Shown here: positions 2,912 through 59,359 of the stretch, piece after piece
Position numbering within the stretch: the first letter of the stretch is position 1
Layout of the letters: every line of letters starts with the position of its first letter
Assembly (NCBI GenBank): GCA_965285935.1
Contig: OZ260661.1
Location: 139,066,001-139,130,000, forward strand
Direction of reading: 5' to 3'
DNA length: 64,000 nt
Source: Ophelia neglecta
Taxonomy: Eukaryota
Notes under the pieces: model-generated
The model's input: only the letters and a program-made list of their open reading frames with translations
What the model was told of the DNA's origin: nothing
Database searches by the model: none
Translations under genes and position numbers: made by a program

Positions 2912-4372
<1,461 letters not shown>

Positions 4373-13960: not shown

Positions 13961-13962
13961 AT

Positions 13963-14033
13963 CGACCTGACGGGGAATCGAACCCCGGCCACGGCGGTGA
14001 GGGCGCCGTATCTAACCACTAGACCATCTGGGA
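13963..14033 (-). pseudogene. tRNA-Glu(CTC)-derived pseudogene
   Basis: The reverse complement TCCCAGATGGTCTAGTGGTTAGATACGGCGCCCTCACCGCCGTGGCCGGGGTTCGATTCCCCGTCAGGTCG resembles metazoan tRNA-Glu-CTC and has A and B boxes. The acceptor stem mispairs and U33 is C. Confidence 0.75.
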
Positions 14034-14049
14034 ACCATAAATATATATA

Positions 14050-15014: not shown

Positions 15015-16989
15015 TATATATATATCGCCTAGGATAAGCCCATCACTCTAGATAGCTTCCCGAACATTATAACGATAGAAAAATATATTATGTAGTGAGC
15101 TTAAATGGGGAACTACTAAGTTATCGACAACGTATAAACAACCTATCTACAATCACTGTGTCGTCCGCTGCTGCCATGGTATTAATGGTAAAAATAGAAT
15201 GAATGATTTTGGCCCAATATCATGTTACGATGAATTTTGAATTATTAGTATTAACCAGATTTATCGAGCAAGATTAATTGGAGCATCGTGAAAACCGTCG
15301 ACTACCTCTTGAAGTGATAAATTTTTTTTTCAAATATTGTCATTACAAGTATGCTTTCTGTTAGAGAGCTTGTGATTGGGGTTTTGAGTGCCTGCAACTG
15401 GTGGTTTTTTTTATCATATTTTCCTTAGGAACTTTACATGTTCGCTGAACTGTTCATTATGTAACGATCATCAAAGGATTCAATCACAGGCCTGCATTCT
15501 GTCTACTTGCTATCTAAGCCGGACTTGCTTATTTGTTACACGGTTGACCATTTTATTTTCATGAATAGTGAGCAAGCGAACATATCTAAAAGATCAAATA
15601 TCGGTTTACCATCGGGAATTTAATCCAGTTGTGGGTATATCAGTCCACAGTTTGTTAATAAGCTGCGATCACAAGGCGTTTCTACACTCAATACATACAC
15701 ATCAGCTGTATCCGGGTATGCGGATATCACATGGGGTCGACAAGCTTCCTGTTATTGACTCAGTTTACGCTTCACGCCTACTTAGGAAATCATTTCGGCA
15801 AACCCAACCACCACAAACAAAACTAGTAGGCCAACGCGCACTCATATAAAAGGCGCTGCCGATATTAAACCATTCATAAGAGTTTCCGGGAACTGTTATT
15901 TGCCCATGACATGCACTAAAGGTTATTCGGTCAAGAATTGGAGCTTGATTTCAATTAGGCAGTTGTCCACCATACTTTCATGAAATAATGGCACCAATTT
16001 AAATCAGATGATACTAGTTGGCCCTCCAAAGGAAAATAGAATACAAGAATAACTTTACTGGGAATAATGTTTGGAAATGAGTCTGTAACCGGAAGACTCA
16101 AACATTGGTACACTCATAGAGTTCAATTTATTTGCCTAAATATGCTAATTAACAAAGAATTAAAGAATTAATTTTCATTTATTATTTACGTAGATTTTAA
16201 GATTAAGCCAAGCACTTCATATTCCTATAGTCTGAGTAATCAACATAATGAAATATATGGCTAAAAGTGCAATAATGGCAGTTAGGGATTGAAACATGGT
16301 TGTTATCATGGAAACTGTATAGTGAGTAAAGATCAGGAAATTAGCATTGATCTGCTAATCTATAAAGGGGCCGAACATTTGATAATGTAAGGGGGGGGGG
16401 GTGAGACTTGTTTTTTTCAAAACATTTTTTGGCCTCTTCCAAAACTTTCTTTTTTCCTCATAGTTGCCCTGCAAAATTTTTTTTTCCTCTTAGGTCATTT
16501 ATGATCCTTTTTTGGAGGTATTATATAAGACAAATTGGCAAGATAATAGGTTATTGATTTATTTCCTAATATATTTGCCACAACATATATGTATTTATGT
16601 ATGTATTTTCTTTATTATAGTGACATGTCAAATTCGATATAACAAATTAATACATTACGTATCAGAAGAAATTTACCCAGCCCAGCCTGAGCTTATATGT
16701 CACTTCAAATGACAGATATTTTACAATAATATAGCTGCCCCATGAGGTGCACACACCAAACGAAGAACAGAGAATCAAATCACACATAAATAGCATCTAC
16801 CAGTGACATAAGACATATTGCTGACTATATTGTAGGTAAATAGATTTACTTATTGAACAGAATCTGCTTTCTAAGAGAGAGAGAGAGCCATAAATATATA
16901 CTTTGCCAAATTTTATATTAATAATTTGGAATTTGCACTGCATATTTTGTTCATATATATCAGGGTACAATTGACTTACACTGTCTAAA

Positions 16990-18731: not shown

Positions 18732-21700
18732 CTAATAAATACCTAGCGCAGCCAGCTGTTCAATTACACTGGGTAGATATCCACGCCTTTAAGAGAAATA
18801 TAGATTACTAAGAAGTAACGCTAATGTCAAATGTCTATATGATGTGATCATAGTTGCAACTATCTCAAAATTTGTTAATGTCATGACACGTGGCTGCTGT
18901 AAAAGAGGTTTTAATAAGCGGATTAATATACGGAACCTAAACCTGTGCGTTAGATTCTAACACATCTCATGCCTCATCATATAACAACATACATATTTCA
19001 TAGTAAATTATCACATCTGCTTACCAGGCTGCTTGTCCCTTGTTAGTTATAAGGTGGACCCCGTTCCATGTTATCTGGCCTCCAGCCCCAATAACGAATA
19101 ATACCCTGGCTTCAAATGCTTGTTTCAAAAGCTTCACTACTCGCTTACCCGCAGTAGTATCCTGTACGTATGCCTTGTGATGTTTACTACCGTACCTTAT
19201 GCCCTGTAAGTCAAGATGATAAAATTAGCAAAAAATACACCTGGATCTATTTAGATTAAATGAACTATTCTGAGATGATTTTCACTTTATAAGACGACAT
19301 TTATATTTAAATGTATACAGTATGTCAATAATGTTGTGGGTTCAGTTTGGATCAGCAACTAACTTTTGAATAAATATTTCAAATTATCCGTATTAGAAAG
19401 GATTGTGTTGATATGATGCAGTAGACATATCGTACCCGTTTTGTTTCTTAATATGCTCAGGAATGGATGATTAGTTTCATTCTCCGCCATCGGAGCTTAC
19501 AATTAAACATAAACACAACTCTTTACCTCGACTTCATGGTCGACATAGAAAGATACTTACTGTAGTCTTTACCCTCACCTGAACTTCAACCCGGAGGCTG
19601 TGCCTTGGTCGGACCTGTTTCTAAGGAATACAGATGTCTTTAAAATAAGTTTGATAAGTTACCTGTTGGTTTCCGGCAGGAAAATGAAATGATATTTCAA
19701 AAGTGCCGCCCTTGTTCCAGCATCCAGTAAGCTGGAGATCCATATGGTTGGTTGTCATAGTTCCATGTGGTTGTCCAGACGACCTGGTCGGCCTGGCTGT
19801 ACTGAGTTGGTTGAATAGAGAGTCTCCATACGCTCCAAAGTCGGAATCACTATACAGCCCATGATTTGGGTCGGTTGTATGTGCCTTGTACTGTGAATGT
19901 GGATATGGCAAAAACTGGTGTATGTTGTCTGTTTCGCCATGGTAATTTTCAACGCTTGGCGTTGTGTTCGGAATAAAATGTTCGTTCAATCTTGACGCCG
20001 ATCTCGTTTTGTAGTTAGCGTCTGGATGGGAATCGTCACGAAGTGTGTATAAATCAAGTTGTTGAAGTATAGAGAGGGCGGGCGATCTTCCGCTGCTTGA
20101 CTGCTCTCGTTGGTTGAGGTTTTTGACTGGAGCAAATGACAGGTTTGAGTCTTCCCTTGTACCGTACGAGTCGAAATCGTACTCTGGCTCCTGCGTAAAA
20201 TCTAGGTCTACATCATTGAAAGACCAGGTTCCTTGATTTAGAGAACTTTCATCGACATTTTGAGATTTAGGATGAGTTTGCAACATAGGACCCGGCAAAT
20301 TCTTATGGCCAGTGTGGACCAGTTTTTCGAGGAGCTCTCGCTTTGCCTGGTTTATATGCTGCTGATCGCCGATAATTTGGATTATTTCAGCATTGCAGTC
20401 AAAAACAACGTATTCATATTTTCGCTGCATGCCTCTAATCGTATCCGAGAGTTTACGTCCAGTGCACTGAAGTTTAGTGATGTCAATAGTTTCTTTGTGT
20501 ATTATGTCATTCAGTTCAGTTGCAATGAGTAAAACTTCCATCACACACTTGTCTACATCCTTCTTCGATCCTCTTATAAGTAAACCGTGCCCGTTCTCTT
20601 GTTCCACTGATTTGATTTTTACATCGCACAGCCTGCTTATTCTATCAAGGTCTGCCTTTCTAAACTGCTGTATATATTTGGACAACCGGTAATCTAAGTC
20701 TATTGTTTCGGTGATATGTTTGCTATTGAAAGATTCAGCTACATGGGTTAAAGTTTTAGATTGGAGTTTGTCAATGGTTTTCTTTGAGTTGCTGTCGACT
20801 ACCGATTTCATGGTCAAACTTGCAGCGTCATTTGTTGCCGTTACTTGTAACTTTCTCTGAAACGACTCGGCTAACTTCATCAAAGTAACCGACTGGTTAG
20901 TATCAATTATTTTCTTGTCGCTGTTGTCATCTAGGTTTATAGGGTGGGTCTGATTTGGCATAACACCCAAACAATCATGAAATTCAGAAACGATCAGTTT
21001 CTGTTGATTTATGTTATGTGATCTCTCTAATATCCGTACCACGACTGAAATATGAAAATGTACGCATATGCACAAGGTTTAGTACGATTCAATGTAATAT
21101 AACTTAATGTATACATTCCCTTTCTAATTGTTTTCATCGTTTACACACAAAAGAAACAACACAAAAAAATTCATAATAAGTACCTTCGTGGTCCTCATAA
21201 TGGATAAAAACACAATCTTGATCCGAATTCCTCTGGTATTGCACAATTTTTCCCCCTCCACTTCTTTGGCTTTCAAAATAGAGCTGGATTAAAAGGTCAT
21301 CAAGGCGTTTGACCCCTTCCACCTTGACAGCTGTAGACTTGCAAACCTTCTGTAGCCCTAGCATGTTACCCCGAAAAGGACGTACTCTCGTGAGTTCTCG
21401 CATCCTACTGAATTCTACAAATAACACAACACATATCACTGTATTCTATGTACAAATATGCAATCAGTAAAGCACCTGCTTTAATAAACGGGAGGCGAAG
21501 CAACAGTTCATTAGGACCGACTCCTAAAAAAGCACTGTTTTAAGTATGTTGTGTTTATGAAAGGAAATCTTGGGCAGATAGAAAAGGCGAGATTGTTCAT
21601 TCAATCAATGTGGAATATTGAGCAATAACTAATTAGCTATTTCAGTCCGCATACAAGAGGGGTTTGGCCTCTGTTTCTTTTCTTGTTTTTTGCCTCCCAA

Positions 21701-24700
21701 AGAACGCAGTGGCACTATTTCTTTTATATCATTATACATTTATAAAGAGACTCGTTATTGTCAAATGTTCATGTTGAATATAGTATTTTTTTCGAGAATT
21801 GGTTAATGATGTGAATCAAACGAGAGTGAAGATACACTAATTTTTATGTACATATACTGAACATAACTGTACAAAATTTTCTTTATATGTGAAGATCAAA
21901 TGATTTTTTTTCTGTCGGTACTTTTATATAAGAATTAAAAATATCTGTCTGGCTTAATATTAGATGCGTGGATTATCAGAAATGATATGCTATATATATA
22001 TATATTCTTCGAATGTTAATCATTTAGTCTAGTAGTCACATCTTTTTAAAGTGCAGTAGTCGCTTTACTCTTAAAGTCCTAATATGGTCTGGGTATTCAA
22101 TTAGGTCATTTCAATCTGTAAGGCTCCGTAGCTGAAGCGGGTCAAATCTTAACTGAGATTAAAATCAGAATTAAATTGCTTAATCGGCCTTAAATTGCTT
22201 AGGGTTTCTAAAAGCAGGATGCGCTCTTCCTATCCAATTTGGTCGTTAATTTATTCCTGATCAATAGAAACACGGATAAACGCAGTCTCAAGTAATCGGT
22301 TATAGACTAATATAATACCTACACGCAATACCGATTCCAGACACAAGGTACACGGCCCTCAAATTAAATGAAATAATCCACGAATGCTTATATTGGACAA
22401 ACCTATTGGACACTGGAAGGTCACCAAAGCTGTAGACATACTTTGACCCAGGATTACACCCTCGATAGGACTTGTAGCATGCTTCTCGAGAAATGCCTTT
22501 AGGTCCGTGAGCGTGCTGCCAAACGTAATATTAGTCACAAAAACTTTTTTATCATCAATACAACCATGTACATCTGGCATTATAATTGCAGCGGCAAGGG
22601 GTTTCACCGGTAAATGCATCTCCTTTGGCCACTGCGGGATACTAGCCACTCTTTCAGCAACTGGAACAATTGTTGAATAAATTAAAGTAAATAGCCTACT
22701 TTCCTGTTTAAAATTAATGGGATGATTGACAGAAATGAGTCCAGTTAATTTCTGGTGACACCTAGGGAAATATTCTACATAACTAATCTCTAAATATTTA
22801 ATGTCTTATAACTTTTAAAACCAATTATTAAAGACCCACATATAACATTTATTATCATATCAAAATGGCAATATTAAGATCGAATGTTTCCGAAAATGTA
22901 ATTGAAAATATTAATTTAACAATGCGAGGGTATCTTATAAACGCCTCCAAGTCCTTTTTCACATTCCCTACCTTTAGCAGATTTGAATGTGATGGTGACC
23001 GAGTTTGCAGATATCAGTTCGTCTGCATAGAATTCCTCTATTGTACCGCCTCCTGATCTGGGATCGCTCTCAAACCACCATTTGAGATACTCCCTTTCGA
23101 TAGCCTGGGGAATATTGGTAACAACGACTGCTAGGCTACAACCAGTGGTGACCGATTCTGTATATAGAGGAGATCTTTAAGAAAATTGTGTCCGGTCTAC
23201 TCGACAGATTAGAATATGCTATACAATAAACTAAAACTGTAGCAACTAAATTGTTATTATTAAGGTTCATCTTTAAACTATTCGCCGCGGTCATGTCAGT
23301 CAAATTGAAAGTGATACAGGAGGGAATCATTATAAGTGTATTCACACATTATCTTTCCCAATATTATTTTTTGTTGATAATAAAGAACCTATATAACATT
23401 GTTATAATAAGTTGAAACACTTTGTATCAGAAAGTTTTTTTTTTGTATCGCGAAAAGATATTTATTTGTATTTTATTCTATTGGTGGTTAAACATGATGG
23501 AAAATATAAGAATTACCTTCATTCCTGGCAGTGTCTCCCAAATGATTTCCGCACGAAAACCTACAATATATTAAAGCGATGACAGTTAAATATTTATTCA
23601 ACTTTATCAATTATGACGTTCTATTTCTTCCAATTTTCGTGGTTACCTGTTCGTAAGTCTGTTGAGGTATGGGTTTTGCACTGTTCTCAAAAATGAGGTA
23701 CTAAATGTGTACTCATAAAAAGTCGCAATGGCCCAAACATTTGCGCTCATTCATGCACTTTAAACAGAATTTTAATTTGCCATAATTCACGCTGCGCCTT
23801 AATTTCAAACTGATCGCCTCTTAGAGTAAATCAATGCTGACAACAAATCTTAACAAGTAATAATTTCGATTAACCTTTCCAAGATGACGATAAACGTGGG
23901 TCTTTTCGAAGGCACAAATACTAAACATCTGGTCATGATTTTCTCTGTATCCTGCACCTGCTTTCTCAGGCTGGTATAAGCCATAGAGTGCTGTGGTAAA
24001 CGTCGATCATTAAGAAATGAGGTTACACAGCGCCGAAAATCCTTCGATGTGTCAGGGTCATGCTCGAACTCTTTTTGGAATGGAAACTGAAAGTCAGGAT
24101 TCAGAAGACAATACAGTACACAGCCATAAGCCCAAACGTCAACCATTTTAAGTTCAGACATATTTGCGGATTTCAGATATCCAAGTATTGCCTCAGGGGC
24201 TTGGAACGGGATTGTTCCCCTGTCAACGTTTGCGGTGCGAGACGCTAGAATCGAATTAGTTTGAATGTTACAAGACCGTGCCTCTCCAAAGTCAGTTATC
24301 TTACACTCAATCACTATATTATCATCAAGAACTCCATTTTTGGTGTTCCCCACGAGGATATTGGACGGTTTAAGGTCTCGGTGAGCGATGTTGCTGTCGT
24401 GTAGGAATGCAAGTCCCTGAGCAGTGTTATTTGCAATAACCCTAATGATATCATACTCTTCTTGAAATAAACCAACAGCATCACATTCATGCAGCAATTT
24501 CAGAAGTTCACTTAGGTTTGTGACCACTTTGTTAATTCCGTATGGTTGTAAGTCGAAGGCCACATATTCCATTACAATGGCAAGTGGTTCAGCGACCGCG
24601 CCCAGTATTGACACTATATTAGGGTGATTCAATGCACAGAGTACATTCAACTCTTTGATCAATGTTTTAACGTATATTTCGTCATCGTCCTTTTGGTTCG

Positions 24701-25045
24701 TTTTCATTACACCTTTCGATTCTACAAATGAATAAGATAATTATTAAAACATTTGGTCAGTATCAAATTTTACTGTTATTTCGGACATACGATATGATAT
24801 AAGGATAACGTTAGTACACCCCGTTTAATAATGCACAATTAATTTGTGTTTATCAAACCCCTACCTCTTTTCAGTTTAAAAGTCACCAAATCTGCTCTAC
24901 CAAAAGAACCTGCCCCGATAGTCTTTTCAACCTTCAGGTCCTCTGGTGTCCATACTTTAACTCCAGCGCTTTCCAAAGCTTTTTTGCGGTTAATATGTTT
25001 ACACTTCAATTCGTGATAGTTCAGTTGGATTTTTGGTCTGTCCAT
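18732..25045 (-). CDS. Protein kinase - 3xRRM - KH - DTC fusion (RING-less DTX3L-like), ~1120 aa
   Basis: Nine exons form one open 3363-nt frame: 25045-24865, 24721-23875, 23560-23517, 23157-22972, 22660-22403, 21414-21184, 21044-19663, 19203-19025 and 18786-18732. All introns are GT-AG with matching phases. Kinase motifs are GAGSFG, VMK, KE, HRDLKPSN, DFG, APE and DVW. PARP14/DTX3L-type RRMs are WFESDPRSGGG and LYFESQRSGGG. The DTC reads GQPHGTM...FPAGNQQ / AFEARVLFVIG..ITWN / YLPSVIEQLAALGIY*. The kinase-to-RRM link depends on the donor AAG|gttaat and a 44-nt exon. Confidence 0.78.
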
Positions 25046-27578
25046 TTCTATAAGAAAAATGAATGATTTGACATTTCACATTGTTTCCGTAGCAATGAAA
25101 CCTATAACACTGAATCGCAACATATGATCGCCTAGTTGTTCCCGAAATATTTTCTACATTTGACTAGTTAAAAGCATCATACATTGGTCAAAAAATAAGA
25201 ATGGTAGATACGTAATGTGTTTAAACCATGCAGTGCAGAATGGGGAAATACACAAAACCGGATCACAGAAGGCATATGCATGACGTCAACACCAAATGTG
25301 CATCAAACGCCCGCGCTCTGATGAAGACATTTATGAAGCAGTTAAGTAGAAAAAAATGTTAAATTCTGCCATAAAATCTGCCCCTTAAATAACTTTGATT
25401 AACTATGTAAGGTTACTGTTTAGTAAGCCTAATTCATCAGCTATGCATCATTGTGGACTGGCTTTTCATCGCATCCTGGACTTGAGAAGTATTCACCGAA
25501 AAACGCTTAAACCAATGGAAATAAGGAATGTAGACAAATCAGTTTGCCCTCTGTAAACATATTGGCCAACTCTCAAAGCTGGCCGATTGATAGACACTGT
25601 CACACGCGATTTCAATATTTAATCAAAATTATTGCAATTAATAACTCAAAATTGGGAAAAAAACTTCTTGATATGCTATGGCTTTGATAACTTTCTCGTA
25701 GTAGTTTGCAAGAATTGAATAAATATCTCATTGCTGTAAGAGCGAATGGAACGAATCTTCTCACATTCAAAACTAATTCGAGATATGCAGTTAACCAAAC
25801 ACCTCCGGCTCAGATGCCTCAACTAGAGGTGTCTATGGAAAAAGCAGGGCATGTCAAATGAGAGGAAACGATCATGGATATAAAAGTTTGTCATGTAGGA
25901 ACACTCATTTCTTTGCCCTCTAATGATTTTGCTGCCATTTTGAAATTTGCTTTTATGTATCTAACATAATCATATGACGACTTTTCGGCTGGGACAAGTT
26001 GGAGTTTTTTTGTGTGATATATTAATCCAAGCAAATTATTATATGCCGCTTTATCAATCACTTAAACTAACGGGACATACATGGTGTCCCCTCTTGGAGC
26101 TTGTATCGCATGTATCCGCATGTATCGTCAGGGTACTCAGGTGGTGGTGGGGGCAATCTAGATGAGGGAGGCTATTTTACACTTTCCTTTATTATTTGGC
26201 GGGGCGGGGGGGGGGGGGGGGGCGGAGGGGGAGGGGTTAACGACTTTTTACCATACCCTTAGGAAAAAAAAATAGAAAATAAAGATATCTTTTGTTTATT
26301 TGCAAATGAAATTCAAACAATCATTGGCCCCTGCTTCGCGTCTCCAATCTTGTTCCCCAAATATTTGAAATTTAATCACCTTTTCTTCTTACTTTTCACA
26401 GTCTAACATATTTCTAGGTATCAGTATGTAAGGCATTATAGGCAACATTTGTAATGCAATGTGTGAAAACGGCCGGCTGACGTTCGGGGGGAGGGGGTGG
26501 GGTGTCGGTGTATGAATCTCCTGCTTTCTTTTCTGTATAGACTGGGCTGTTATGTATATTTGCATTTGTTTTGCTCAAGTTGGCGAAAAAAACCTTCTTT
26601 AAACCTTCTTTAAACCTTCATCTGTCAGAAATTCCTTGGTTCCATTATTTCGTGTAATATTTTTGGCTATGTTGCCATGGTAACCAACCATAATGCTAGT
26701 AATACACAAATTGCCGTAACTTGCTCATTATCAGTCACGAAGAGCTGGGTTTTAGCTCAAAATGATAACCTGTTTGTCAAGAACAATTTCTGGTAATAAA
26801 ATGTAGCAATCATAGCCTAATTTGCATAAATACAAGATGGCCACCATTTTCAATATTTGCTCATTTTTACCTTCTTTGGTTTGGCAAGCCAATATATTAA
26901 ACTATCATGTAATCATGTACGAAGTATGAAGATTACGATATTCATTTCTTGGTGTAAATATAAATATAAATATATGTATTAAGTGTATGAAGCTCTTATC
27001 GTGTTCATAAGGTCACGTTACCTGGCTCCATTTTTTTTTGTCAAAATTCTCAATTATTTTACTTAATTATGAAATCTTGACCAAATAGACCTTTTCAACA
27101 TAAACATTGTGTTTCAACAAAGATATCATGTGATTTAAACCTTAATTTAGTAACTTATGTTCATTATTATATTCTTAAAAAATTAAGGGAGATTGGGTCA
27201 AAAAGGTTTTGATTCTTTCAATAACAGGTGGGCGCGGGGGGGGGGGGGGGCTCGAAAAAGGTTTGAAGCTATACTTAAGGGGAAAGCAAAAATATCTGAA
27301 TAATTTTTTTCCCAAAGGATACCAAAAGACCCAGCTAAACTATTCCATTATTCAAAAGCGTGGCCGAGTTGTTAGGGCGTCCGCCTCGCAAGTTGCAGAT
27401 CGGGGAGCAAATCGCGTCAAACCCAAGACGTAACGAGACACTTAGGTGCAAAGCCCCTTTGGAATCCCGCGATAAAGTCATGGGCATAGGCCAAAAGTTT
27501 TAGCAGTCTTGTATCTCATCATTGAGTTGCTTGTCACAATCCTAAGAATACTTAATGTGAAATACTGAGGGCAAAAGT

Positions 27579-27853
27579 TAATATCGTCTGTAGAACAGTC
27601 ATTGGGTTAAATGCATTGACAAGTGTTCTGTTTTGCTAATCAACCACTCGTTTTAGATGAGCGATAATGGACGAATAAAAAAATAACAGGCGGCAACAAT
27701 GCAATGGGAATACTAGGTAATATCGTCTGTAGAACAGTCATTGGGTTAAATGTATTGACATGTGTTCTGTTTTGCTAATCAACCACTCGTTATAGATGAG
27801 CGATAATGGACAAATAAACAATAACAGGCGGCAACAATGCAATGGGAATACTG
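27579..27853. repeat. Two-copy 139-bp tandem duplication in the divergent intergenic region
   Basis: taatatcgtctgtagaacagtc...gggaatact is repeated at offset 139 with a few substitutions. Confidence 0.9.
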
Positions 27854-29524
27854 TTACCAAACTGATTTAACGAAAGCCAATGCCACACACACATATTATT
27901 TGATTCCTCAAATACGTATCTTCAGTTTAAGGACATCTAGGCCCTATCTCGTTTCTGTCATGTTAGCTTGCGAATCTTTTTCAGCCTTTTCTATGGATAA
28001 TAATTGGTCCATTGTGTTGGTCAAAGGCGATTAAAGATTATTTTATCAAATGATTATTATTTATAAGGTTCATTTGTAGATTCAACTAGAATTGCCATTG
28101 GCAGTAATGTGTCGCCACATACCTTATATGTTCGCTATTTAGGTCATGCCATATTTATCGCCTGTCAGCCAGAAAATTAGACGAGAAACAAAACACCCAT
28201 TATCCATTGGAGACTCCAGCGAGAAAGAACATCTTATTCTGGCCTAATCTGTATATGATAAGCGTATATGTAAGCTCTAATTTATGGGAATGTTGTAAAT
28301 CTGAAGGTTTGTATTGAACACCAAAGGTGGTGTGACTTTCATAGCCTACATAGCAAAATGAGGTCACGAATCTATCTCCGCTATGCTTCGCTTCGCGGGA
28401 TAAAAACAGATACTGATAGCTCCCCTGCCAGACGACCGGCATTTTCGTGGTGGTATCAGGACTGATCAACCAGTATAATGCAAACAGCGCGCACATTCCA
28501 TATGAACTAGTACACATGCACTCTTTTCACTGTAAACGCTCTATCTTCTTGAGCTATTAGTTTACAAATGTCTAGTATATACCTATATCCAGGGGCCTGG
28601 TCAAGGTGCCCTTCAGGAAAGAAAATATCGAGGGAATCTAATTTTAGTTGTAATCATATTTGGGGCCTATTTTATGGATTAAGAGGCACGAACAAGCAAG
28701 GGCCCCCACAGCCGTCGAAGTCAATTTCGTCAAAATTGCAATAAAAGGTAAAATCTGCCAAGTAACACTCGTATTTATAAATAGTTTTGAATAATGTCGA
28801 TATTAAAAATCTGTGCTTATTTGCCAACCAGCTTAAGAGGAACCAGCAGTATATATTTACTGCCCCAAGCAGCGTATACAGTACATCAGACAGATACATT
28901 GGGTCAGTAAAAGGATGTACATCACACACATCAAGGTTATGTATATGTGTCAACAAAGTAATGATTAGCAGCATAAACGAAAAGCAGTATTATAACGAGA
29001 CAGGCATTTATCGCCCAATCATTTGTTGGCCTACTAACTACTCTGGTCGCTGTATGCAGCACTGCGCTCTTAGGCGCTGCGAGAGAACAATGGAATAACC
29101 ATCGAAATGGGAATAGAATAGCGCCAGACATGATACGACATATAAAATACGAAATGAACTAGGATAGGAATACAATGCTCATCCATTTGGATCCCAGATA
29201 GCATACAAATTTTGGGCATCAGGGGACAGGCGAGTAGGGGGTCTTATAGGGCGGGGACCAAAGGAGTATGAGAAAAAACGACCAGGCCTGTTAAGAGCAA
29301 GGATTTGGCCATAAAACCAAAAATTCTGCTGGGCCTGAACGTCCTGCGCGCGCACGCGCGCTCACCCTTCTCCACCCCACGTAACAACCCGCTGTCAGTG
29401 AAGAACCAGAGGAGCAGTGCTAAATCGTGCAGTGTGGCGCTACAGCGCCGAATACGAAGACCCCAACTACCTTTTCAGGTTGATGGGGTACTAGGTCTAG
29501 ACCCTTTCTCACCAATTCTGACGT

Positions 29525-29765
29525 AAAAATAGGCACTTATAGCTCCCCTGCCAGGCGCCCGGTATTTCGGGGGTAGTATCAGGACTTGTCAACCCGATGT
29601 CAGTATAATGTGACTGGGTGGGGTTCCCTGTCTGGTGTCTACGGCAGGTACTCCAGTGAGGCAGCACTCTAAAGAGGGCATTGGGCCCACTGTCACAAGT
29701 AGGCACCGTGGCGATATGACCATATAAGTGTCAAATAAGTGTCACGTGAAACCCCAAACAACCCA
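29525..29765 (+). mobile_element. SINE body/3' fragment (Meta-SINE-like core)
   Basis: Reads ctcccctgccaggcg...gtcagtataatgtgactgggtgggg...gtgaaaccccaaacaacc. A diverged partial copy lies at ~28417-28480, and a tRNA-like A-box head at ~27360. The family assignment is from recall only. Confidence 0.55.
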
Positions 29766-31990
29766 ATTCTGATATATTCTAATCTTAACACAGTTGCTTT
29801 TATCGGCATTTAGCGACCATAGTGACAGGCTGTTCTAAAAACTATTAACTCGAAGAACCTACCTTAAGGTTGAATAAGGATATCAATAGTCGATTATCTT
29901 CACGCTAGGTGTTCTATTTGCATCAGACTTAAAATAAACTTCCCACGTATTATATCAAATCGGCCGAAATCTATCGTGTTGTATTTGCGGTGTCGTGTTT
30001 GGCGTTGTGCCACCACCAGTGCTTTGCTTTAGTACATTTGTCAGGTCATGATATGAATAGCAACACTTACGAAACTTAAATACGGAATTTGATTTGCGGG
30101 AAGAAGGGGAATTTCCAGTGTCATCTTTGGCATTGTGCCCCCCCCCCCCCCCAACACAGTTGCTTGGTCTACCATCGTCATTTTGAACCAGGTCATGTCG
30201 AGTGAGGGTCATGTCAGTTCAGGTCTATCAAGGTCAAAGGTCAAGTTCAAGGTCTTGAGAACCAATGTGAGTGAGTCAAACTATAGTGTTATCTGTTAAA
30301 CACCGCTGTCTTGCGAGTATACGTTTATATGTGAGTATAGATTTATGTCTAATTACGCATACATACGTATGCCTAGTGCACTGTAAGTCATTGAAGCACG
30401 CTTAGTACAGCAATAGCCGCTCTCCAGTTTAAGACATACATTTTATATTGGCTTCCTTGTCATAATTCTAACTAGTTAGGCATGGTGGAATAGCACATTT
30501 ATCGCTCGGGTCGTGCAACTACTAACGACTGCAGCCCTTAAACATTTATTTGTTGTTGGTGTGTGTGTTGCCCATTATAATGACGACGCTCACATTGAAT
30601 ATTAAGTGATGGGGTGGGGGGGTGGGGTGGGGTGGTGGAGGCACATCCATATCCATCAATACTAGGTAGGTGCCTCCAGAAGAGTCGTTTTGTTTTTGTA
30701 TTGTTTCTATGGGGGGGGGGGGGGTAGTTTCTTTAGCTAAGGGTCCCCAACCATGGGTCCCTTTTTCATGAAGGTATCGTTATTTTAACATTTTCCCCCT
30801 TTACCAAAAGGTTGTTTTTATGGTGAGATAAATATATTTGTGCTTGAAGAGCCCCCTGGCGATACAAGAGTCCATAACAGCCTCTATCCCCAATAAATAG
30901 GCCATATTGCGACTTCCGGAAAAAAGATTCCGTTAAAATTTGCACTTATTAACGGTAGGGTTTTAAGACTTCTGTTTTGAGGCCAGTCCCCCCCCCTCCC
31001 CGCCCCCAGGCGTTCAACTCTTAACGACTGCAAAGCTGCCTTTGAACTGAATTTTTGTTGGTTTTGTGTGTGTGTGTGTATGTGTACACAGCTCGCTGTT
31101 AAAGTTAATCTTAAGTCGACATCAACATTGAATAATAAGTACACTTCTGATGAAGGGAGCGTTCATAATTTCCTGCCTGGGGTGCTCGGGAAATAGAGGC
31201 GTATAATAGGCGATTTCCCTAGAGAGTGCACGAACATGGGAGGAGGGAGGGGGGTACTGCCATTTTCATCCTTACTAGGTTTTTATTTTTCTCTGCCTAC
31301 TACCAAATGAGGCGGAATACATAAAATAGGCCTGCTTCTTCCGCCAGACAATTAAAATACTTGTCTTGAACATATGGTCATGCATCAGCCATGTAATGTT
31401 ACAATATGTAATTGTAGCTTCAGTTTATTATAAATGACAAGCCATTAACGGGTTTGAAGTTATTGCTGGTGCAAACCATCATGGATTATGTCTCCCACTT
31501 TACTCCAGCCTGTGCTGTGTAGCTTCTAAGAATTTATTAGAAATTCAGTTCTAAATCGTCATGACTAGTTGACACTTATAAGAGGCAAACATAGTTTATT
31601 TCCAAAGGAAAGAAGGTAACAGATAAAATGTTTGGTATGTGGAGATTGTATATCATGATAGCCATATTCAACTTTTTTAATAATTGGTGAATGAAATATG
31701 TTGAGGTTTATTGTGATGTTTGACACGGAGCAGACCGATTCATTTGGCAAAAGCCATAAACATGAAAGTTATGGTTTCATGAATCATGCTAAGGTAGATC
31801 AAAAACTCTAAGCATCAAGTGATAACTTTGACAGGAATATAGTATTTAGGAACATTTAAAAGCGTTTTCTGGACAATGATAGGAAAAAGTTGTACTTCAT
31901 AAAACCAGAGGAATTCGTGTACATTGCAGTGTTATTATATTGCATATCTTCCTTTTTATCGTCAAGTTGACCACAACCTTCATCCTCGAT

Positions 31991-34900
31991 ATGGCAACTG
32001 GACGGAAGAGAATCCAACTTAAGCAGCCCGAGCCAGCTAAGTGCCCTGTTTCTGTCAAATTGGAAAACAAACTCGATATTGGCGTTCCAGTTTGGTCACT
32101 GGGAGATGTTGTAACAGAGAGTTACTTCGATGATAACAGTTTTGGAGCAGTCAAAACTGCTCATCATAAGACCGAACCAGGTATGAGATAATTGAAGACG
32201 TCTCAAACTATGCACTTACCTGTCCCAGAATATTGATGAAGTTTTTGATGTTTATTTTGATTTCCATCTGTTTATGTACTTAAAATAAAATTAAAATGGA
32301 AATGCGGTAAAATGTTAACATCCCAGTTATCATTGCAGCTAATTTTATTATATGTAAATAATTTTTTCATCGTTTAGGGTTGGCGGCCTTGTGGGCCACG
32401 ACGATAAAGCACACCAGTGATGAATGCTTTGCTAAACTGTTTTTGTCCGACATAGAACTCTGCCAGTTCAAACACAAACATATCCTTCAGATAGTAGCAT
32501 TGTCCATACAGCCACTAGTTGTTTATCATGAGGTAAATTCCTTCTCATTTGAAACGTACAACCAGCCAATTGTCGTCCACAATTTGGCAGATTTGTTGTA
32601 TCAATGTGACCGAGCAGAAGTAGTGCCCAGGATATATAACGACTACAATGTGCCAAGGACAGTTATAGACGCCGTGGTATCGGGCCTTGCGTTTTTACAT
32701 AGCAAAAGTGTCAATTGTGAACAATTAACCCCACAGAATATCATCATTGGCCAAAGCAGACTCGACAATGCTAAAGAAGAACTTGTCTGTAAAATTGGGG
32801 ACTTTTTACAAACCAGACGGTATTGCGAGCAGACACAAACTGGGTTGACCACCAAGTCCCTAGCGAACGAGCGCCAAACAGTCCCGTTTCAGCCACCGGA
32901 AAAATTAGTATATCAAGGGCGGTATTCTGATCCAGGGAAAACCGATGTTTGGTGTCTCGGTATGGTCACCTTCTGTGTCCTGAACCCTGATGTTCCATTT
33001 CCATTTTACCTAGAGTATACTCGCTCGCAGGCAAAGGATTTACGACAATTGGTAATTGAGAGTCTGAAGCAGAATAAGGTACCAGAAATGTCCCCTAAGT
33101 ATGACATTGGTAAATCAGAACCCCACCTCGTGGCACTGATGCAGCTTGCCTTGATCGATAACCCCGAAGAAAGACCGAGAGTGTCCGACATACAAAAATG
33201 GTAAGAAGTTCGTTGTTTTTTTTAAGTAAATATTGCAACTGAACCTGGAACCTATTCCAGATAAAAATAAGCCTAGGTTAATAGGTAATCCCAGATTAAT
33301 TGCTCAATAAGTGTTGATAATGACTTCATAAAAGGCACAATGCGGGTTTAGCCGCAAACCGGCTAAATAATTGGTTTATTGATGTCAAGCTTGGACTGTG
33401 AATTGAAAAATGGTGCGTGTCATAAATAACAAGCATTTTTTAATGATAATTCGGTCATTTCAGACAACCTTTGGCCAATAGTAAAGACAGATCTAGTAAT
33501 ATTTTGATACCTGGCTATTATCACCCGAGCTCTAAGAGCGTGGTCATAGGCAAAAATCTCTTTGTTAGTATAACAGGACTTTTTGTTAAGCCGAAGCTCA
33601 TTTTAAGCACGGTTTACACCAGTAAGGGCTTAGAGCACTTTTTATCTAACATGCCCCTGGTTATTGCGATAATAGTTTTGCTTTTAAAGGGATTTTTGAG
33701 GAATCGTTGTTGCTTTGGAGGCAAAGCTTTTATGTCCGGAGGTGGGGGTGCGGGTGGAGGTGGGATTGGGGGCTGGAGGCCTTTTCATATCCTTGATGGA
33801 GTTCGATTGAATTGCCTCCCGCTTTCATTGCTGAGGACAGTTTCTGAAAACGCCCTTGTGTCTTTATCTTACTTTCAGTTTGATAGATGGAACAGGACCC
33901 ACTTGTTATACACTGTCTAACAGACCAGAGTTACTGTGTGACTTACTGCGAAGCACTGAGTGCCAAGCTCTAATACGAAATGCACTAAGGAGCAAATCTA
34001 TAAAAATCACGATTGGCTCAAGGAACATAGTTGTTTACGCTCTGACCAGGAAAATGGCTGAAGATACAGTAACCTTTTTCAATGAAAATTTCATACACGA
34101 GAACATTGAAGTTGACACTGCTGGCAAACCGGTTTTAGTGTCAAAAAAATGGGAATCATTTTTAGCAAACCACTTGGAGGAAAACAAAGGTCTCTTGCAG
34201 ATGAAAACAAACCATGATCAAAGCACAGTGCACATTTGTGCTGCTAAAGTTATACAGATTGTAGACAAAATAAAGCATTTTCTGGAGGAAAACACCATAG
34301 TCGAGAAAAGAATCAGTATTCCAACTGAGAAAATGGAATTTGTGGAAACGCATCTTATAACATTTACTAAAACAATTGCTCAAATGCCAAATCTGTCTTT
34401 CCACTCAAATGGTGGCGATCCCTTTGTACAGATAAATGGTAACATGAGCGAAATCAAGACAAGTACCGACATGATCGAACGATACACAAAAGCCATTGCC
34501 ATTGTGGCATATGCCCTGGAAAAGCCCGCCCTAGTTTGGCACTTTCAACAGCGGAAAGGTGAAGCTAGCCTGTCCGAAATCAGTCGACACCACAATGCTA
34601 TCATTAGAATGGAAAGAGAGGAGGGGACTTTCCAATCGAGTAAGTCAACGTCTCATTTCACTCTGATTTCGTTCGCATCGTTCTGGTCTACATTGGAAGA
34701 CAATTCAATTATATTATACCTTTATTTCTGAGATATATATGGGTCCAATCCTTAAGTGTTCGCAAAGACTGGTTACAATTAATGAATACCGTGTGCTTGT
34801 ATTGCAAAGTATAAGGTAAGAATAAAACTTGAAAATTGACTATATTGTGAATGTAAATAGGCACATGATAAATATTCAAATATTACAAAGATAACCAGAA

Positions 34901-37900
34901 ACATGCTATTACAACCCTTACAAGTGAATGGACATGTAAAGAGAAACAACTATATCAATGGAGCCAAGCGCATTGGAACGTTCGGCATATTTATTCTGTG
35001 ACTGAGACAGTTACAGTGGCAGTAAAACATATAATAGGTCAAAAAATGTCTTCGAAACAGATCTTCAAATACACGTATTGTTTACGAGTTTTGAGGGATC
35101 TTATATACAATTATAATAAAGAATTGCATGGCTTTTGCTTGATTTTACCCCAAAATGAGGCGCACTGTGCTATGTATACCTCGCTATAGACATCTGGTTC
35201 GGTTGAAGTTAGCCTCAGTTAACCTTGTCTGGTTAGGATATATCTGATCAAATACTTTTAAATTAAAGTATTATCAATCTGGTTTTAGGTTTATCAAGCA
35301 GATGCATAATCATCACGGCAGAGTCCATCGATGTCGCAAAGACGTGTGTAGAAACATTAAAAGACTTATGCAAAAACATTTGGCTGGAAAAATCGGTCTC
35401 ATATCCAGGAGAAAAGAACACTGAAGATTGTCGCAATCAAGTAAGTGCATGGATTTTGCACTTTTGCCATTACCTGTCATTTTTCCTTTCCATCACTATT
35501 ATACTGTGTACATTGCTGGTTCTGTCTTTTTGGCATATTTATATTGTTTAGACCGTTCTAAAACCAATTGAAATGTGTTATGTTTATGACACAACATTAT
35601 CAAAGATCCATTATATTAGCTGGTGGTACAATTCCTGTACAAACTTCATCACTCAAGTTTCAATGGTATTGTGTCCTAGGTTTTGACTATAAAAAGAATG
35701 GCCGTTCGATTGCACGTAGACATGGATCTAGAAGGCGATGCTATAAAACTAAGCGGGGTAGGGGATCAGGTCAACGCTATGGCAGAGAACATTTACAAGG
35801 TGTTTATAGCCGGAATTGAAAAGGGAGCTGCTGAAAAGGAGCTTGCAGCCCTGACATTACTACATACGCAGGTGTGTTAAGGATTTATTTGCCTTCGCAA
35901 TGTGGCTTTTATCACCAGACTCTCCTTATATCAGATTACGTCTTTTATTGGCTAAATTCTGTGGCAAGCGTCGTTAGTATTTAAGCATGGCGAATTGGTA
36001 TTTAAGGGCCTACATACGACGGTAGCTGGTGATTACTGACCGATTAAACAGACTGGTAATAACTCTGTTTTGTCTTTCGCATATGCACTACAGTTGTATG
36101 AGCAAACTGGTAACATTTGTTTTGTTCAAAGGTGAAATGGTATTATGAAGTAAATGGACAGTTCGTAGAATATCTAGTCGATCATAACGCCACATTGGAA
36201 AGAGCCTATACCGAAGGAAGACATGATATTTCGTTAGTCTCAAATCAGGGTAGGGAAACCGTGAATGTTAGAAAAATGGAAGGTCACAACCAAAGTGGTA
36301 CATTTCGAGTTCTGAGGCAAATTCAAGGTAATGTAATGCAAAAAATGAAAAAAATATCCCTCCGAATTCAGCTACTATGTAAACTCACGAAATATATTCG
36401 ATCGGTTTTTTATTTAGAAACTTCATCAGAAAAATTGCCTGCTGAATGGTCCAAGATGGGTAAAACTGATGTCTTTATGTTGGTTGCCTTGTCCGCTGAT
36501 TCCAAGGAATTCAATGATGTCAAGTGTGAAATACTTAGGACTTCACAAAACAAGATCAAAGAAGTTCTCAAGGTAGCCATTATTCCTATAGTCAGTGCAG
36601 GTAACAACTCTACATTTTAATGTGGAGATGGTAAGGTATAGTAATTTACTACGAGTTAAACCTTAGTATCTTTGTTGGCGGACACGTCATGTCATGTTCT
36701 AACGAGTGGCATGTTCCAGTACTGCGTGTTGCTCATTCTTCAAAGAATATTAATTGATTAAGGCCACCAGAGGTCGAAGGCCATTTGTATTCCGCCAATG
36801 AAATACTCTTGTTGTTACATCGATCCTTCTAATATTATATACACTTGAATATTAAAATAAAGTGATTACTATTTAATCAATTAATTATAGCATTGAAACG
36901 TTCATCTGGTTACAAAAATGTCCATTGTTTATTTAGATTGAGCGAGTTCAGAATCCAGGCCTGTACCGGAAGTACAAAGTCCATAGAGAGGAGATGGTGA
37001 AGTCTGGTACTGCAAGACCGATAGAAAGGCAACTGTGGCATGGATCTGACATAAATGCTATAGCTAGCATCAACTTGTACGGATTTGACCGGGGATACTG
37101 TGGTAAAAACGGTAAGAATATTGAATAAAACAAGCTTTTTTGGTCCCATATTGAGACTTTTTTGGAGCGATTTAATGGCGTATTCCTGTTAAACAATTAC
37201 GCTCCTTGTGCTGGGGATCCACTTCTGTTTTTGTTTCATAAGATATATTTTGTGACAAGAACACTTTTACTTGTCTTAAATATAGGTTAAAATTCTGCAT
37301 TTTTATTAATCTTTGCCTAATGATAGTTCCATAAAACGACTCCCCTATATAGAATATATTTTTGTAGGATTGGGGTTTCTACTCTGTAACATGTAACTTT
37401 GTGGCTGTCTGTTAGTGTAGGAGTGAACATGTGAATTTATTGAATTTGTTAAAAAATATACATTACAAATACAAGAAGAAATACCATGATAGAATTCAGC
37501 ATGAAAGTTATTACTTTATGCATATTAACTCGATAAATATTAAGTATGTTTTGCTTACCAAATAGAGGATGTGTGGCCGCTGTATATGGTGCCGATTCTC
37601 GTTTATAATTTTATTATAGTTGATATTGATGAATGGTTGGCTTCACCCCATACATGAATAATGTGAGGGTAAAAAAATCTATAGTATAAGGTTGTTGAGT
37701 GGTTGAGCTATATAGCCCGAAAACCGTTCTGTATAAATAAGAATATAAATAGCCCAAGATAGTGTCACGCCAATCATAATACCTAAAAACTAGACCCATT
37801 ACAATTTTTTTCCTGAGAAGTAGATCAAATGTAATACCTTTTGTTAACATCTTGATAACTTGTTCGACTTGATCCAATCAACTTTTTTTTCTTTTCCTGT

Positions 37901-40152
37901 GAGCTTAGATTCTTTCTTGATTAACATGTTTTCCCGATGCCAAAATATTGGTATCATTGGCAAATATTATAGGAAATACAGCTCAAGATTCATTCATAAG
38001 TTCATTTACATATATTAAGGACACCAATGGCCCAAGTATAGAACTCTCGGGTTCTACACTTATTCTGTAGGTTAACACTCAATGATATAGAGATAATGTT
38101 CTATGTCGTGTAAGCAAACTATGTGCAATATATCTATAAGAATATCATGTGCCACCGTTTCAAAGGCTGGGTAAAGTCTATACATATACCCATTACAATA
38201 TTCCCATTGTTTATGAGAAGTTTATCTACCAGGCCAGTCAATGCCATATTTGAGCTGTGTTTTCCCCTAAACCCTAAACAAGAGTCTTCATACGTCACAC
38301 GCTCAAATATATAAGAAAACAGATCTAAGATGGCAGAACACAGACTGGGTGATAAGTGTTAAGAAATACGCTTTTTTCACATTTATGTACAGGAATAAAA
38401 GAAGCAAGTTTGCGTTCTGAAGGAAAAGTGGCAGTGGTCAATGACATGCTTGCATAAGTACCATCACAGCCATGACCTGTAGTTTGTAATGATGTGATCA
38501 TTGTTTTACTTTACTCATATCAGTTTCTTCAAAATACGTTGTGCGAGTAACACCTTGGCCAACACATATTTTTTGGATTTTTATGACGCTAGCCTGGGGC
38601 CTACATTTAAATACAATTGATTAAGAATGGATATAACCCGCCTGTTTGTATCATTTATAAAAACAACAGACTTGTTTTTAATACCTTATTTCTATTAAGA
38701 ACCTCTTTAATAGTTCTCCAGGTTGTCCTCAAATTACTTTGGTTTCCTTCATTTTATTATAATAATACTCTCTTTCTTGCATACGCAAAAGCTTATTCTT
38801 GGCTGCCTGATAATCTTTATAACATTCTTCAAAGATTAGGATTATTTCTAGGTTTTTCAATAATTTCAGAGCAAAAAAAATCAGCCAACGTTTTTTATTA
38901 CCTTAAAGGAATAGGTTCTTTATGAACCCTTCATTATAAGGTACATGCCATTTGCCAGTCATTAACCATCGGCCAATTTACACTTGATGTTTGTATAAAA
39001 TAATGCAATAATTCTAGCTAAATATTTCCTTGATTTACAATAACGAACATTGTTTAAGGGCTTGGAATTTTTGCAAATGCTAATTGTTTGAAAATGATCT
39101 AAAGCATGGTGTAACACGTATCATTTATTAACTTAATATTCCTATCATCATTACTTAATATTTTGTCAATTAATGTGGCAGAATTCCTCTGTATCTGTTT
39201 AGGCCTATTGATTAATCAAACAGATCCGTTGAACATGGTTTTGAAAATTCCAGAGTGAGAAAGTGAATATAAGCATTGAGAAAACTAATATTAATATTAA
39301 TCCTGGCAGACCTAAACCTGTTTATTGTCATGCAAATACCAGTAATGGATAAAAAGATAGCTCAGATGATCAAACATTTGTCCATTCTATCATAAGAAAC
39401 GTTAAGGTGGTGTTGTTTAATATATATGATGTGTTCATCAAACCTAAGAGCACCAAGTTCACAAAGTGAATACAGTGGTGCAATAATGAAGAAAAAGGTG
39501 CATATAGATTTTTAATCCGGAACATAAAATAAGGAACATAGAGTATATACAGGGAACATATGATGCACTGGGAACAACATAGATATAAACAACAAAGCTT
39601 ACAGGCTATCTGTAACCATGTTCACATAATTCAAATATTTACACAATGGAAATATTTTGCACAATTGGCATTTAATTTATTTAATCAAATCCTTTACATG
39701 AAGTACCATGTTTTTAATGAGGATACTTTTACCGGCAGTCCAACAGCGTTTATTTTCCTTCTTGAGGTTCGGACTTTCGTCCAGACTGTGGCTCTTTCTA
39801 TTGTCTTTAACATTAAATCAAATTGTTCACCCTAAACACGACTGTTATGATTTCTGATAACAATTCTGTTTTACTTTCAGCTACTGCATTTGGCAGTGGA
39901 GTTTATTTTGCTGCCAACGCGTCCTATTCATACAGTTATGCCAAAGCCGACAGCAGCGGAAAAAGGTACATGTACCATTGTAATGTGTTGACCGGAGATT
40001 TCGCTCAAGGACACTCATCTATGAGAGTGACGCCGATTAAGAATGGATTAATTAAATTTGATTCAGTTGTAGACAATACCAAGTCGCCAAGTATATTTGT
40101 AATATTCAACGATGCACAGGCATATCCAGGGTATTTAATCACATTCAAATAA
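31991..40152 (+). CDS. PARP14: Pseudokinase - KH - WWE - PARP catalytic (mono-ART) fusion, PARP14/15-like, ~971 aa
   Basis: Nine exons form one open 2916-nt frame: 31991-32180, 32378-33200, 33879-34639, 35289-35440, 35680-35871, 36132-36327, 36418-36572, 36937-37111 and 39881-40152. WWE reads VKWYYE...FVEY...LERAY. The ART reads IERVQNP...LWHGS...GFDRGYCGKN/ATAFGSGVYFA...FDSVVDN..SPSIFVIF..AQAYPGYLITF* (H-Y-I triad). The symbol denotes the subfamily only. Confidence 0.85.
37600..39500 (-). mobile_element. Degenerate CR1/L2-type LINE in the last PARP intron
   Basis: Minus-strand remnants include IFANDTNI (FADD-like, ~37945-37966), SILGPL (~38030-38050) and endonuclease-like segments near 39150-39400. 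Many stops are present. Confidence 0.65.
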
Positions 40153-58905: not shown

Positions 58906-59359
58906 ACATATTTACAAAACTTGTACAATGACTGACACTGCAGGGACAAAAATTTAGATCAAAGTTTGGCCCTCCGGTAGATCTAGGTCAAGGAAACTGA
59001 AATTCGAATCAGTTTGAGGTCTTTCCAAATGAACCTGATAAAGGTAAGTAAATTTGAATTGGCTTGAGCATGTTTCACAATGCAAAAAACCATTTGAGAA
59101 CAGTATGAGCTAATATGCTTGACATTTGTTCCAATTCGGTAGGATATCTAAATACATCCACAGGGTGCAAAGAAGGTATATGTTTTGCATGAACATTGGT
59201 CGCTTACTATTGGCTCATCCTATATATATATATGTATATGTATATATGTATATATTTATTCAGATAAACTTGGGCGCCTTCGTATTCTCTTAGGGTGACT
59301 TTAATAAAATATTCAAAATCATCACTGACAAGTTATTGTTGGAGTTTTTTTTAAGTATA

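Follow-up and report, generated by a model that had tools for sequence, protein, structure and literature searches.

Two divergently transcribed genes in a 64,000-nucleotide window of the Ophelia neglecta genome (contig OZ260661.1, positions 139,066,001 to 139,130,000) each begin with a kinase-fold domain and continue into parts resembling DTX3L and PARP14, respectively. This raises the question of whether the two genes form a dedicated immune signalling system, as had been proposed in a sequence-only reading of the locus. The exon evidence indicates that the window genes are not a unique two-gene system; they are members of a kinase-headed family of at least 45 genes. They are probably two real multi-exon genes, which represent reduced, head-to-head members of a lineage-specific, expanded, kinase-headed PARP14/DTX3L-like family. 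In the predicted gene products, an orphan Ser/Thr kinase is fused before the RRM/KH scaffold common to PARP14, PARP9, and DTX3L.

The window belongs to a chromosome-scale contig of 149 Mb (C1) in a eukaryotic genome of 762 Mb. Exon models were derived from open frames, splice sites, and paralog comparison, with phases verified arithmetically, and searches were run with single exons, rather than joined spliced proteins, as queries. The two genes diverge from ATGs at 25045 (minus strand) and 31991 (plus strand), with 6,946 bases between them, exactly as the sequence-only reading had placed them. The minus-strand gene (the minus gene) is modelled with nine exons over 25045..18732, encoding 1127 codons and a stop, and the plus-strand gene (the plus gene) with eight exons over 31991..40152, encoding 885 codons and a stop. 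In both models, every intron is GT-AG, the phases are consistent, and the exons contain no internal stop. The proposed junctions 23875/23560, 23517/23157, and 33200/33879 are canonical and in phase at the sequence level, and these positions, as well as 18732 and 40152, all fit the gene models. In a search of a read-run index for RNA, three runs of one study, which matched 76–97% of the words, were rejected as RNA evidence; the matched words include the introns, and the runs are therefore DNA, probably from the sample that was sequenced for the assembly.

The two kinase heads are homologous, and one is intact whereas the other is catalytically dead. The kinase exon of the minus gene (24721-23875) matched Pfam Pkinase with an expectation value (E) of 5.7e-36, and that of the plus gene (32378-33200) with E 5.4e-13, indicating that the fold-level match is kept. 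The two kinase exons are mutually 30% identical (E 1e-40), their first exons are also alike, and two intron positions are common to both genes: a phase-1 intron after the glycine-rich loop (G-loop) and a phase-2 donor where the kinase domain ends. The proposal that each gene starts with a related kinase-fold domain is thus borne out. The minus head carries all of the motifs expected of active eukaryotic protein kinases, with the G-loop IGAGSFG, the beta3 Lys in VMK, the alphaC Glu in LIKEL, the catalytic loop HRDLKPSN, and the DFG and APE motifs. In the plus head, the corresponding segments read FDDNSFG, Thr at the Lys position, CEQLTPQN, DFL, and PPE. Because the G-loop, the beta3 Lys, HRD, and DFG are lost, the plus head is a pseudokinase, and the minus head is, as judged from its motifs, an orphan-type Ser/Thr kinase in which all of the catalytic motifs are kept. 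The earlier description of one intact and one dead kinase therefore holds.

The best solved match of the kinase was CDK2 (E ~1e-13), and an atlas search for look-alikes of the kinase returned generic kinase clusters only. In a maximum-likelihood tree, the minus head falls inside this genome's own clade with a branch of 0.35, and the terminal branch of the pseudokinase reaches 3.6 substitutions per site, compared to a median of 0.17. The closest relative of the pseudokinase in the genome shows 34% identity at best, and a word-indexed homolog search of the protein collection with the pseudokinase found none. Joint structure prediction of the two kinase exons gave a score of 0.02, which counts neither for nor against binding.

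Whether the kinase of the minus gene is spliced to the downstream RRM exons was addressed by comparing 15 readable loci: both window genes plus 13 C1 and C5 paralogs. The donor GT interrupts the same codon (...E-R/W) after its second base in 15/15 loci. The in-frame stop past the kinase donor is not conserved; it usually lies within the donor itself (GTAG or GTAA), it lies eight codons downstream of the donor in the minus gene, and it is absent in L009 (GTGG, 28 more open codons) and L011 (GTAT, 12 more). A 44-nt bridging exon with a pyrimidine tract, AG, and GT is found in 10 loci; its length is exact and its peptides differ widely. Only the frame dictated by the kinase donor is open in this exon, which hands phase 1 on to the first RRM exon (RRM0); in the five loci examined, namely the window gene and paralogs A-D, the RRM0 acceptor has the corresponding phase. 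The introns of the window gene and of paralogs A-D are otherwise unalignable, and the splice features are therefore under selection rather than leftovers of a recent duplication. Genome-wide, all 85 RRM0-type exons lie 0.5–8.5 kb downstream of a same-strand kinase exon, and an RRM0-type exon is present behind 45 of the 59 kinase exons. The kinase–RRM fusion of the minus gene is established as far as sequence alone allows.

The body of the minus gene had been described as DTX3L-like, which proved to be correct in part. The gene contains three PARP14-type RRM exons, with PF23085 scores of 27–28 bits that lie above the cut-off for RRM0 and RRM-B. The KH_DTX3L profile (PF21718) is fully covered by exon 7, as a weak match (E 0.23), and this region is 27–35% identical to the KH region of the Macro-RING-DTC paralogs. 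The DTC is split over exons 7–9: Pfam DTC positions 4–40 are matched weakly in exon 7, and exon 8 scores 36.9 bits against a Pfam cut-off of 25, with human DTX3L (3pg6) as the best solved match (E 5e-6). No RING match was found in any exon of the minus gene, nor a Cys-rich stretch in exon 7, and paralogs A-D and a neighbouring gene match RING strongly. No Macro match was found in the minus gene, either; a low-complexity segment of ~150 amino acids sits where paralogs A-D carry Macro and RING.

The remaining DTC is the most diverged and weakest among the ~52 DTC exons in the genome. Exon 9 gave no tblastx matches; it is very diverged, and its tail was read directly against the paralog tails. 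The tail is shortened, with GYLPSVIEQLAALGIY (IEQL) where the paralogs read KEEL. In DTX3L, the catalytic residues of the DTC are H707 and E733 (PMC10810221). The first His of the HHKT motif is retained in the minus-gene DTC (VHLIT, aligned to 3pg6). The second Glu of the paralog KEEL, which would correspond to E733 of human DTX3L, is replaced with Gln in the minus gene. On this tentative mapping, the catalytic Glu of the minus-gene DTC appears to be lost. Because the RING is absent, the minus gene does not encode a Deltex-type E3 ligase, and the label "kinase-DTX" overstates what its sequence retains. The output of the minus gene is likely to be phosphorylation, perhaps with reading of ADP-ribose or nucleic acids, rather than ubiquitin ligation.

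For the plus gene, the proposed PARP14-like mono-ADP-ribosyltransferase body is well matched, with three KH-like domains, a WWE domain, and an ADP-ribosyltransferase (ART) domain with the H-Y-I triad. The AlphaFold2 model of exon 3 consists of three beta-alpha-alpha-beta-beta-alpha units, with predicted local distance difference test (pLDDT) values of 81–93 over approximately residues 11–150 and 56–82 up to approximately residue 205, and its top fold matches are the KH proteins GLD-3, FMRP, and Dim2/Pno1. Exon 3 is 19–23% identical to exons of seven PARP-like paralogs; the paralog KH exons start ~50 residues earlier and contain one more unit. The WWE scores 27.8 bits against a Pfam cut-off of 21.1. 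The best solved matches of the ART are PARP15 and PARP14 (E ~1e-21), with the alignment spanning the triad position. The domain is, from these motifs, apparently an active PARP14/15-type mono-ADP-ribosyltransferase. A frameshift in the ART was considered and rejected, since 36937-37111 forms one continuous frame that matches a paralog exon. The plus gene lacks RRMs, and no Macro match was found in 31991-40152; macrodomains are present at the PARP-type locus E, described below, and in the paralog exon L032.

The two fused gene models differ in the strength of their junctions: comparative splice evidence is strong for the minus gene, and for the plus gene it is limited to a homologous donor and an acceptor of compatible phase. 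The plus donor at 33200 is homologous to the family donor, and at 33879 a good pyrimidine tract leads into an acceptor of the right phase, with a 218-codon open exon behind it. The plus gene has no bridging exon. For the tentative exon 4, no paralog was found anywhere in the genome, and skipping this exon also keeps the frame.

The kinase head is not confined to the window. There are ~60 copies of the kinase exon in the genome (59 in the RRM0 linkage count), and the head occurs in at least 45 loci with several different tails, usually in the order first exon, kinase exon, short bridging exon, and RRMs. Four paralogs (A-D) are collinear, with first exon, kinase, RRM0, RRM-A, RRM-B, KH, Macro, RING, and DTC. 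Locus E and its twin ~57 kb away (C1:138728000-138770999, L021-L025) carry kinase, RRMs, KH, Macro, WWE, and PARP over 37 kb; with its intact kinase, locus E is a candidate for a full-length kinase-PARP14-like gene. The tails of the family comprise Macro-RING-DTC, Macro-WWE-PARP, ankyrin repeats (in another species), and possibly fn3 arrays. As to the last of these, the C5 copies (L026-L030, C5:113091000-113134999) show six RRM exons followed by at least 10 same-strand exons with one fn3 each (Pfam fn3 E 1e-10 to 1e-12); these possibly belong to the same transcript, which would then combine cytosolic with extracellular-type modules in an unusual way.

A relative of the head is also found in another organism. 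The closest kinase in public data (ENA ERZ25069296, contig ctg22641 of 71 kb, positions 9632-15284; L038) is 46% identical and is followed by the same order of parts: first exon, kinase, a 56-nt bridging exon of the same phase class, RRM0, RRM-A, RRM-B, a macrodomain, and ankyrin repeats. RRM, DTC, and PARP parts were absent from all 150 of the top-ranking database relatives of the kinase, suggesting that the fusion is confined to a lineage barely sampled by public protein sets. Three database relatives (P0054, P0095, and P0111) are long predicted proteins with SWIM or MULE, which may be merged calls or may indicate a transposon link. Carriage of the kinase by a transposon found no support in this genome, in which the copies sit in segmental arrays with RRM exons. 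Searches of the open literature found no kinase-Deltex or kinase-PARP14 architecture and no such expansion in invertebrates, in line with the sequence-only reading, to which no described kinase-Deltex or pseudokinase-PARP14 architecture was known; neither a PARP14 review nor a preprint on DTX3L-PARP9 co-evolution refers to a kinase domain. In invertebrates, PARP14-like genes are already known to have duplicated in clusters, according to the citation of Perina et al. (2014) in PMC13224862.

The window sits where a PARP-rich segment of C1 (137.1-138.95 Mb) meets a DTX-rich segment (139.0-139.67 Mb), in a cluster of ~4 Mb. Other kinase-headed genes are arranged in tandem arrays, not in divergent pairs. 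When DTC and PARP adjacencies elsewhere in the genome were compared, by exon coordinates only, none of those within 75 kb was tandem, and convergent adjacencies were about as common as divergent ones. Divergent DTC and PARP exons on opposite strands, 25–39 kb apart, occur at C9:62.54-62.58, C9:64.55-64.59, C1:137.79-137.82, and C1:137.15-137.19 Mb; these recurrences may reflect an old head-to-head DTX/PARP arrangement. The repeats in the spacer between the window genes are dispersed, with thousands of candidate copies over all chromosomes at 82–94% identity, and a Pfam search of the open reading frames within the spacer gave no matches. The minus ATG is preceded (25046-25060, minus strand) by TTCTTATAG followed by AA, in which the AG two bases 5' of the ATG is a plausible acceptor. 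A non-coding first exon may thus lie further in the spacer, which would narrow the distance between the transcription starts. The exons and the spacer are listed in Table 1.

Table 1. Modelled exons of the two divergent genes and the spacer between them (window coordinates).
Feature	Position	Strand	Description
Minus exon 1	24865..25045	-	ATG and G-loop IGAGSFG; phase-1 donor AGAG/GTAGGG; homologous first exons in paralogs A-D, L003-L012
Minus exon 2	23875..24721	-	Kinase core; phase-2 donor AG/GTTAAT at 23875; in-frame stop at 23850 is intronic
Minus exon 3	23517..23560	-	44-nt bridging micro-exon, phase 2 to 1
Minus exon 4	22972..23157	-	RRM0, PARP14-type; PF23085 27.3 bits; 52–58% identity to paralog exons
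Minus exon 5	22382..22660	-	RRM-A; 40–44% identity to paralog exons, order matching
Minus exon 6	21184..21414	-	RRM-B N-terminal part; PF23085 E 2.8e-6
Minus exon 7	19663..21044	-	RRM-B end, KH_DTX3L-like stretch, ~150 amino acids of low complexity, DTC start
Minus exon 8	19025..19203	-	DTC core; HHKT changed to HLIT, 6-residue deletion; Pfam DTC 36.9 bits
Minus exon 9	18732..18786	-	DTC tail RGYLPSVIEQLAALGIY, then stop; GYPD lost, KEEL changed to IEQL
Spacer between ATGs	25046..31990		6.9 kb; repeat insertions at ~27355-28470 and ~29520-29766
Plus exon 1	31991..32180	+	ATG and degenerate G-loop FDDNSFG; phase-1 donor
Plus exon 2	32378..33200	+	Pseudokinase core with CEQLTPQN, DFL, PPE; phase-2 donor TG/GTAAGA at 33200
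Plus exon 3	33879..34533	+	Three tandem KH-like domains; good acceptor; 3' end uncertain, donor GTTTGG weak
Plus exon 4 (tentative)	35680..35871	+	64 codons, starting and ending in phase 0; modelled solely from an open frame and splice sites
Plus exon 5	36132..36327	+	WWE; Pfam E 3.3e-6; matches locus E WWE exon
Plus exon 6	36418..36572	+	Linker and ART start (LPAEW...); aligns with locus E exon
Plus exon 7	36937..37111	+	ART with catalytic His (LWHGS); 50% identity to locus E exon
Plus exon 8	39881..40152	+	ART Tyr (GVYFA), Ile (PSIFVIF), stop; Pfam PARP E 2.2e-11

Other DTX-related genes are also seen in the window. RING and the start of a DTC are found at 131-775 and 2912-3451 on the plus strand, with DTC exons at ~974-1195 and ~3650-3871; the two segments (131-1195 and 2912-3871) are tandem, near-identical RING-plus-DTC gene ends, which look like a local duplication of the 3' part of a DTX3L-like gene. 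A Macro-RING-DTC gene at 59354-62646 on the minus strand has a well-conserved DTC with a canonical tail and probably runs beyond the end of the window; a kinase exon for it was not seen within the window. A single 400-codon open frame in the PARP/DTX cluster (10714-11916, minus strand) shows a weak EamA-like transporter match (28.6 bits), and 156 N in a row at 55280-55435 mark an assembly gap or a masked segment.

Three other explanations were weighed against membership in a reduced, expanded family. The kinases might be stand-alone two-exon genes that end at the stops at 23850 and 33204, with the RRM-DTC and KH-PARP parts being separate genes with their own promoters. Both kinase frames indeed meet a stop one to eight codons past the proposed donor, and many database relatives, of which the best 150 are free of RRM, DTC, and PARP parts, are ~340 amino acids long and end right after the kinase. 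However, the donor GT is invariant and the stop is not, as seen in L009 and L011, the frame of the bridging exon and its phase hand-over to RRM0 recur in five loci and in a second species, the RRM0 and KH exons begin at acceptors with no nearby in-frame ATG, and an RRM0-type exon never occurs without an upstream kinase exon. These points make stand-alone kinases very improbable, although the exclusion is less firm for the plus gene. A second possibility, which we consider unlikely but the least so of the three, is that the genes are non-functional relics of cluster turnover, that is, chimeras from partial duplication or deletion that are decaying or silent. Such an origin would fit the loss of the Macro and RING of the paralogs from the minus gene, the most diverged DTC in the genome, the loss of RRMs, macrodomains, and the first KH unit from the plus gene, the loss of all catalytic motifs from the plus kinase along its branch of 3.6 substitutions per site, some weak donors, and a plus exon 4 without a relative. 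It is set against the 1127 and 885 codons that are open and free of stops and frameshifts, with canonical splice sites, where a neutral copy at such divergence would be expected to hold many stops. The ART triad, the WWE, and the kinase motifs of the minus gene are intact as well.

The sequence-only reading had instead favoured a dedicated, co-regulated pair, in which a kinase–pseudokinase heterodimer would gate mono-ADP-ribosylation, or the pseudokinase would be a decoy for pathogen effectors, in parallel to DTX3L-PARP9. The head-to-head genes with homologous heads and shared intron positions are consistent with such a pair, as are their complementary losses, an active kinase with a dead DTX part in one and a dead kinase with an intact-looking ART in the other. 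A minus-strand DTC followed by a plus-strand PARP exon recurs, by coordinates, at several places in the genome, and vertebrate DTX3L and PARP9 share a bidirectional promoter (PMC13224862). On the other hand, the kinase head is common to at least 45 genes and the pairing is thus not neighbour-specific, the 6.9-kb spacer contains repeat insertions and a compact shared promoter is not visible in it, other kinase-headed genes lie in tandem rather than in divergent pairs, and convergent and divergent DTC/PARP adjacencies are similarly frequent. We regard a dedicated pair as quite doubtful. The same degree of doubt applies to the broader proposal that the family is a new class of nucleic-acid-triggered immune sensors linking phosphorylation with ADP-ribosyl and ubiquitin signalling, and the window genes an obligate complementary pair, divergently expressed and assembling via the heads or the KH domains.

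Several points weigh against the reading of the genes as real, reduced members of the expanded family. No RNA for this organism was found in the read-run index. The donors GTTAAT at 23875 in the minus gene and GTTTGG at 34533 in plus exon 3 are weak. The plus gene is a singleton, with no paralog or ortholog sharing its kinase-to-KH junction or its exon 4, and its exon 3 starts ~50 residues inside the paralog exon, as expected of a rearranged chimera. The lost catalytic residues, the lost whole domains, and the pseudokinase branch of 3.6 substitutions per site would also fit pseudogene drift. An immune role, in turn, would follow from homology to vertebrate PARP14 and DTX3L only.

With family membership as the most probable reading, the genes can be compared with known systems. 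The minus gene resembles human DTX3L in its DTC, which has 3pg6 as the best match and lies above the Pfam cut-off, in its N-terminal RRM modules and, weakly, its KH-like stretch, and in its setting within a PARP/DTX cluster, where it diverges from a PARP-family neighbour. Unlike human DTX3L, it has no RING and would thus not recruit an E2, and its DTC has HLIT in place of HHKT and has lost GYPD. Unlike described Deltex proteins, it is predicted to carry an N-terminal protein kinase with intact motifs. The divergent orientation of DTX3L-PARP9 is matched by the window pair, which has the 6.9-kb spacer in place of a compact bidirectional promoter. Similarly, the plus gene resembles human PARP14 and PARP15, to which its ART is closest, in the H-Y-hydrophobic triad (Ile here, Leu in PARP15), the WWE directly upstream of the ART, and the tandem KH-like domains. 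In contrast to PARP14, it lacks macrodomains and RRMs, bears an N-terminal pseudokinase, and encodes ~885 rather than ~1800 amino acids.

The paralogs (A-D, E, and the C5/C9 arrays) and the relative in the other organism share the first exon, the kinase exon, and the intron phases with both window genes, and the paralogs share the bridging exon and the RRM0/A/B order with the minus gene. The paralogs differ from the window genes in their Macro-RING-DTC or Macro-WWE-PARP tails and intact kinase motifs. Loss of the macrodomain is common to the two window genes; in addition, the RING was lost from the minus gene and the RRMs from the plus gene, the head of which is catalytically dead. PKR, with dsRNA-binding domains and a kinase, and RNase L/IRE1, with a kinase or pseudokinase and an effector, provide a functional analogy only; in them, an array that binds nucleic acid or another ligand goes together with a kinase or pseudokinase whose dimerisation controls an effector. 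IRE1 kinases rank among the better solved structures matched by either head, but the homology is that of the general kinase fold, and the domain order and the effectors differ.

PARP14, PARP9, and DTX3L have RRM/KH/macro layouts in common; they are induced by interferon and bind one another via KH-like domains (PMC13224862; PMC11080071). By analogy, ligand binding by the RRM/KH array might cluster the proteins, as with PKR or RNase L, and the clustered kinase heads might then trans-phosphorylate and tune ADP-ribosyl or ubiquitin effectors in an antiviral-type pathway, with the pseudokinase head acting as a docking or regulatory module. If the window proteins interact, KH–KH contacts, as in human DTX3L-PARP14 and DTX3L-PARP9, would be at least as likely as kinase–pseudokinase pairing. 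The antiviral-type role, the nucleic-acid binding by the RRM/KH domains, and the KH-mediated contacts are suggested by the vertebrate literature (PMC13224862, PMC11251020, PMC11080071), and the ligand-driven clustering and the pseudokinase docking are speculative.

The interest of the locus lies mainly in the family, and less in this particular pair. If the window genes were indeed an obligate complementary pair, they would correspond, in an invertebrate, to PARP9/DTX3L, with a kinase switch added. As they stand, the two genes would be natural separation-of-function versions, with only the kinase predicted to be active in one and only the ART in the other. PARP14, PARP9, and DTX3L are central to, and poorly understood in, interferon-induced ADP-ribosylation and the ubiquitylation of ADP-ribose. 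The kinase fusion is kept in two species and is many-fold expanded, which argues that, in one animal lineage or more, phosphorylation is wired directly to ADP-ribosyl and ubiquitin signalling. The fusion would also offer a way of testing what is sensed by the RRM/KH arrays and how the enzymes become activated. Modular swapping of tails behind an unchanging sensor head, as seen in this family, is characteristic of immune repertoires that evolve fast, and the genome contains dozens of natural variants for comparison.

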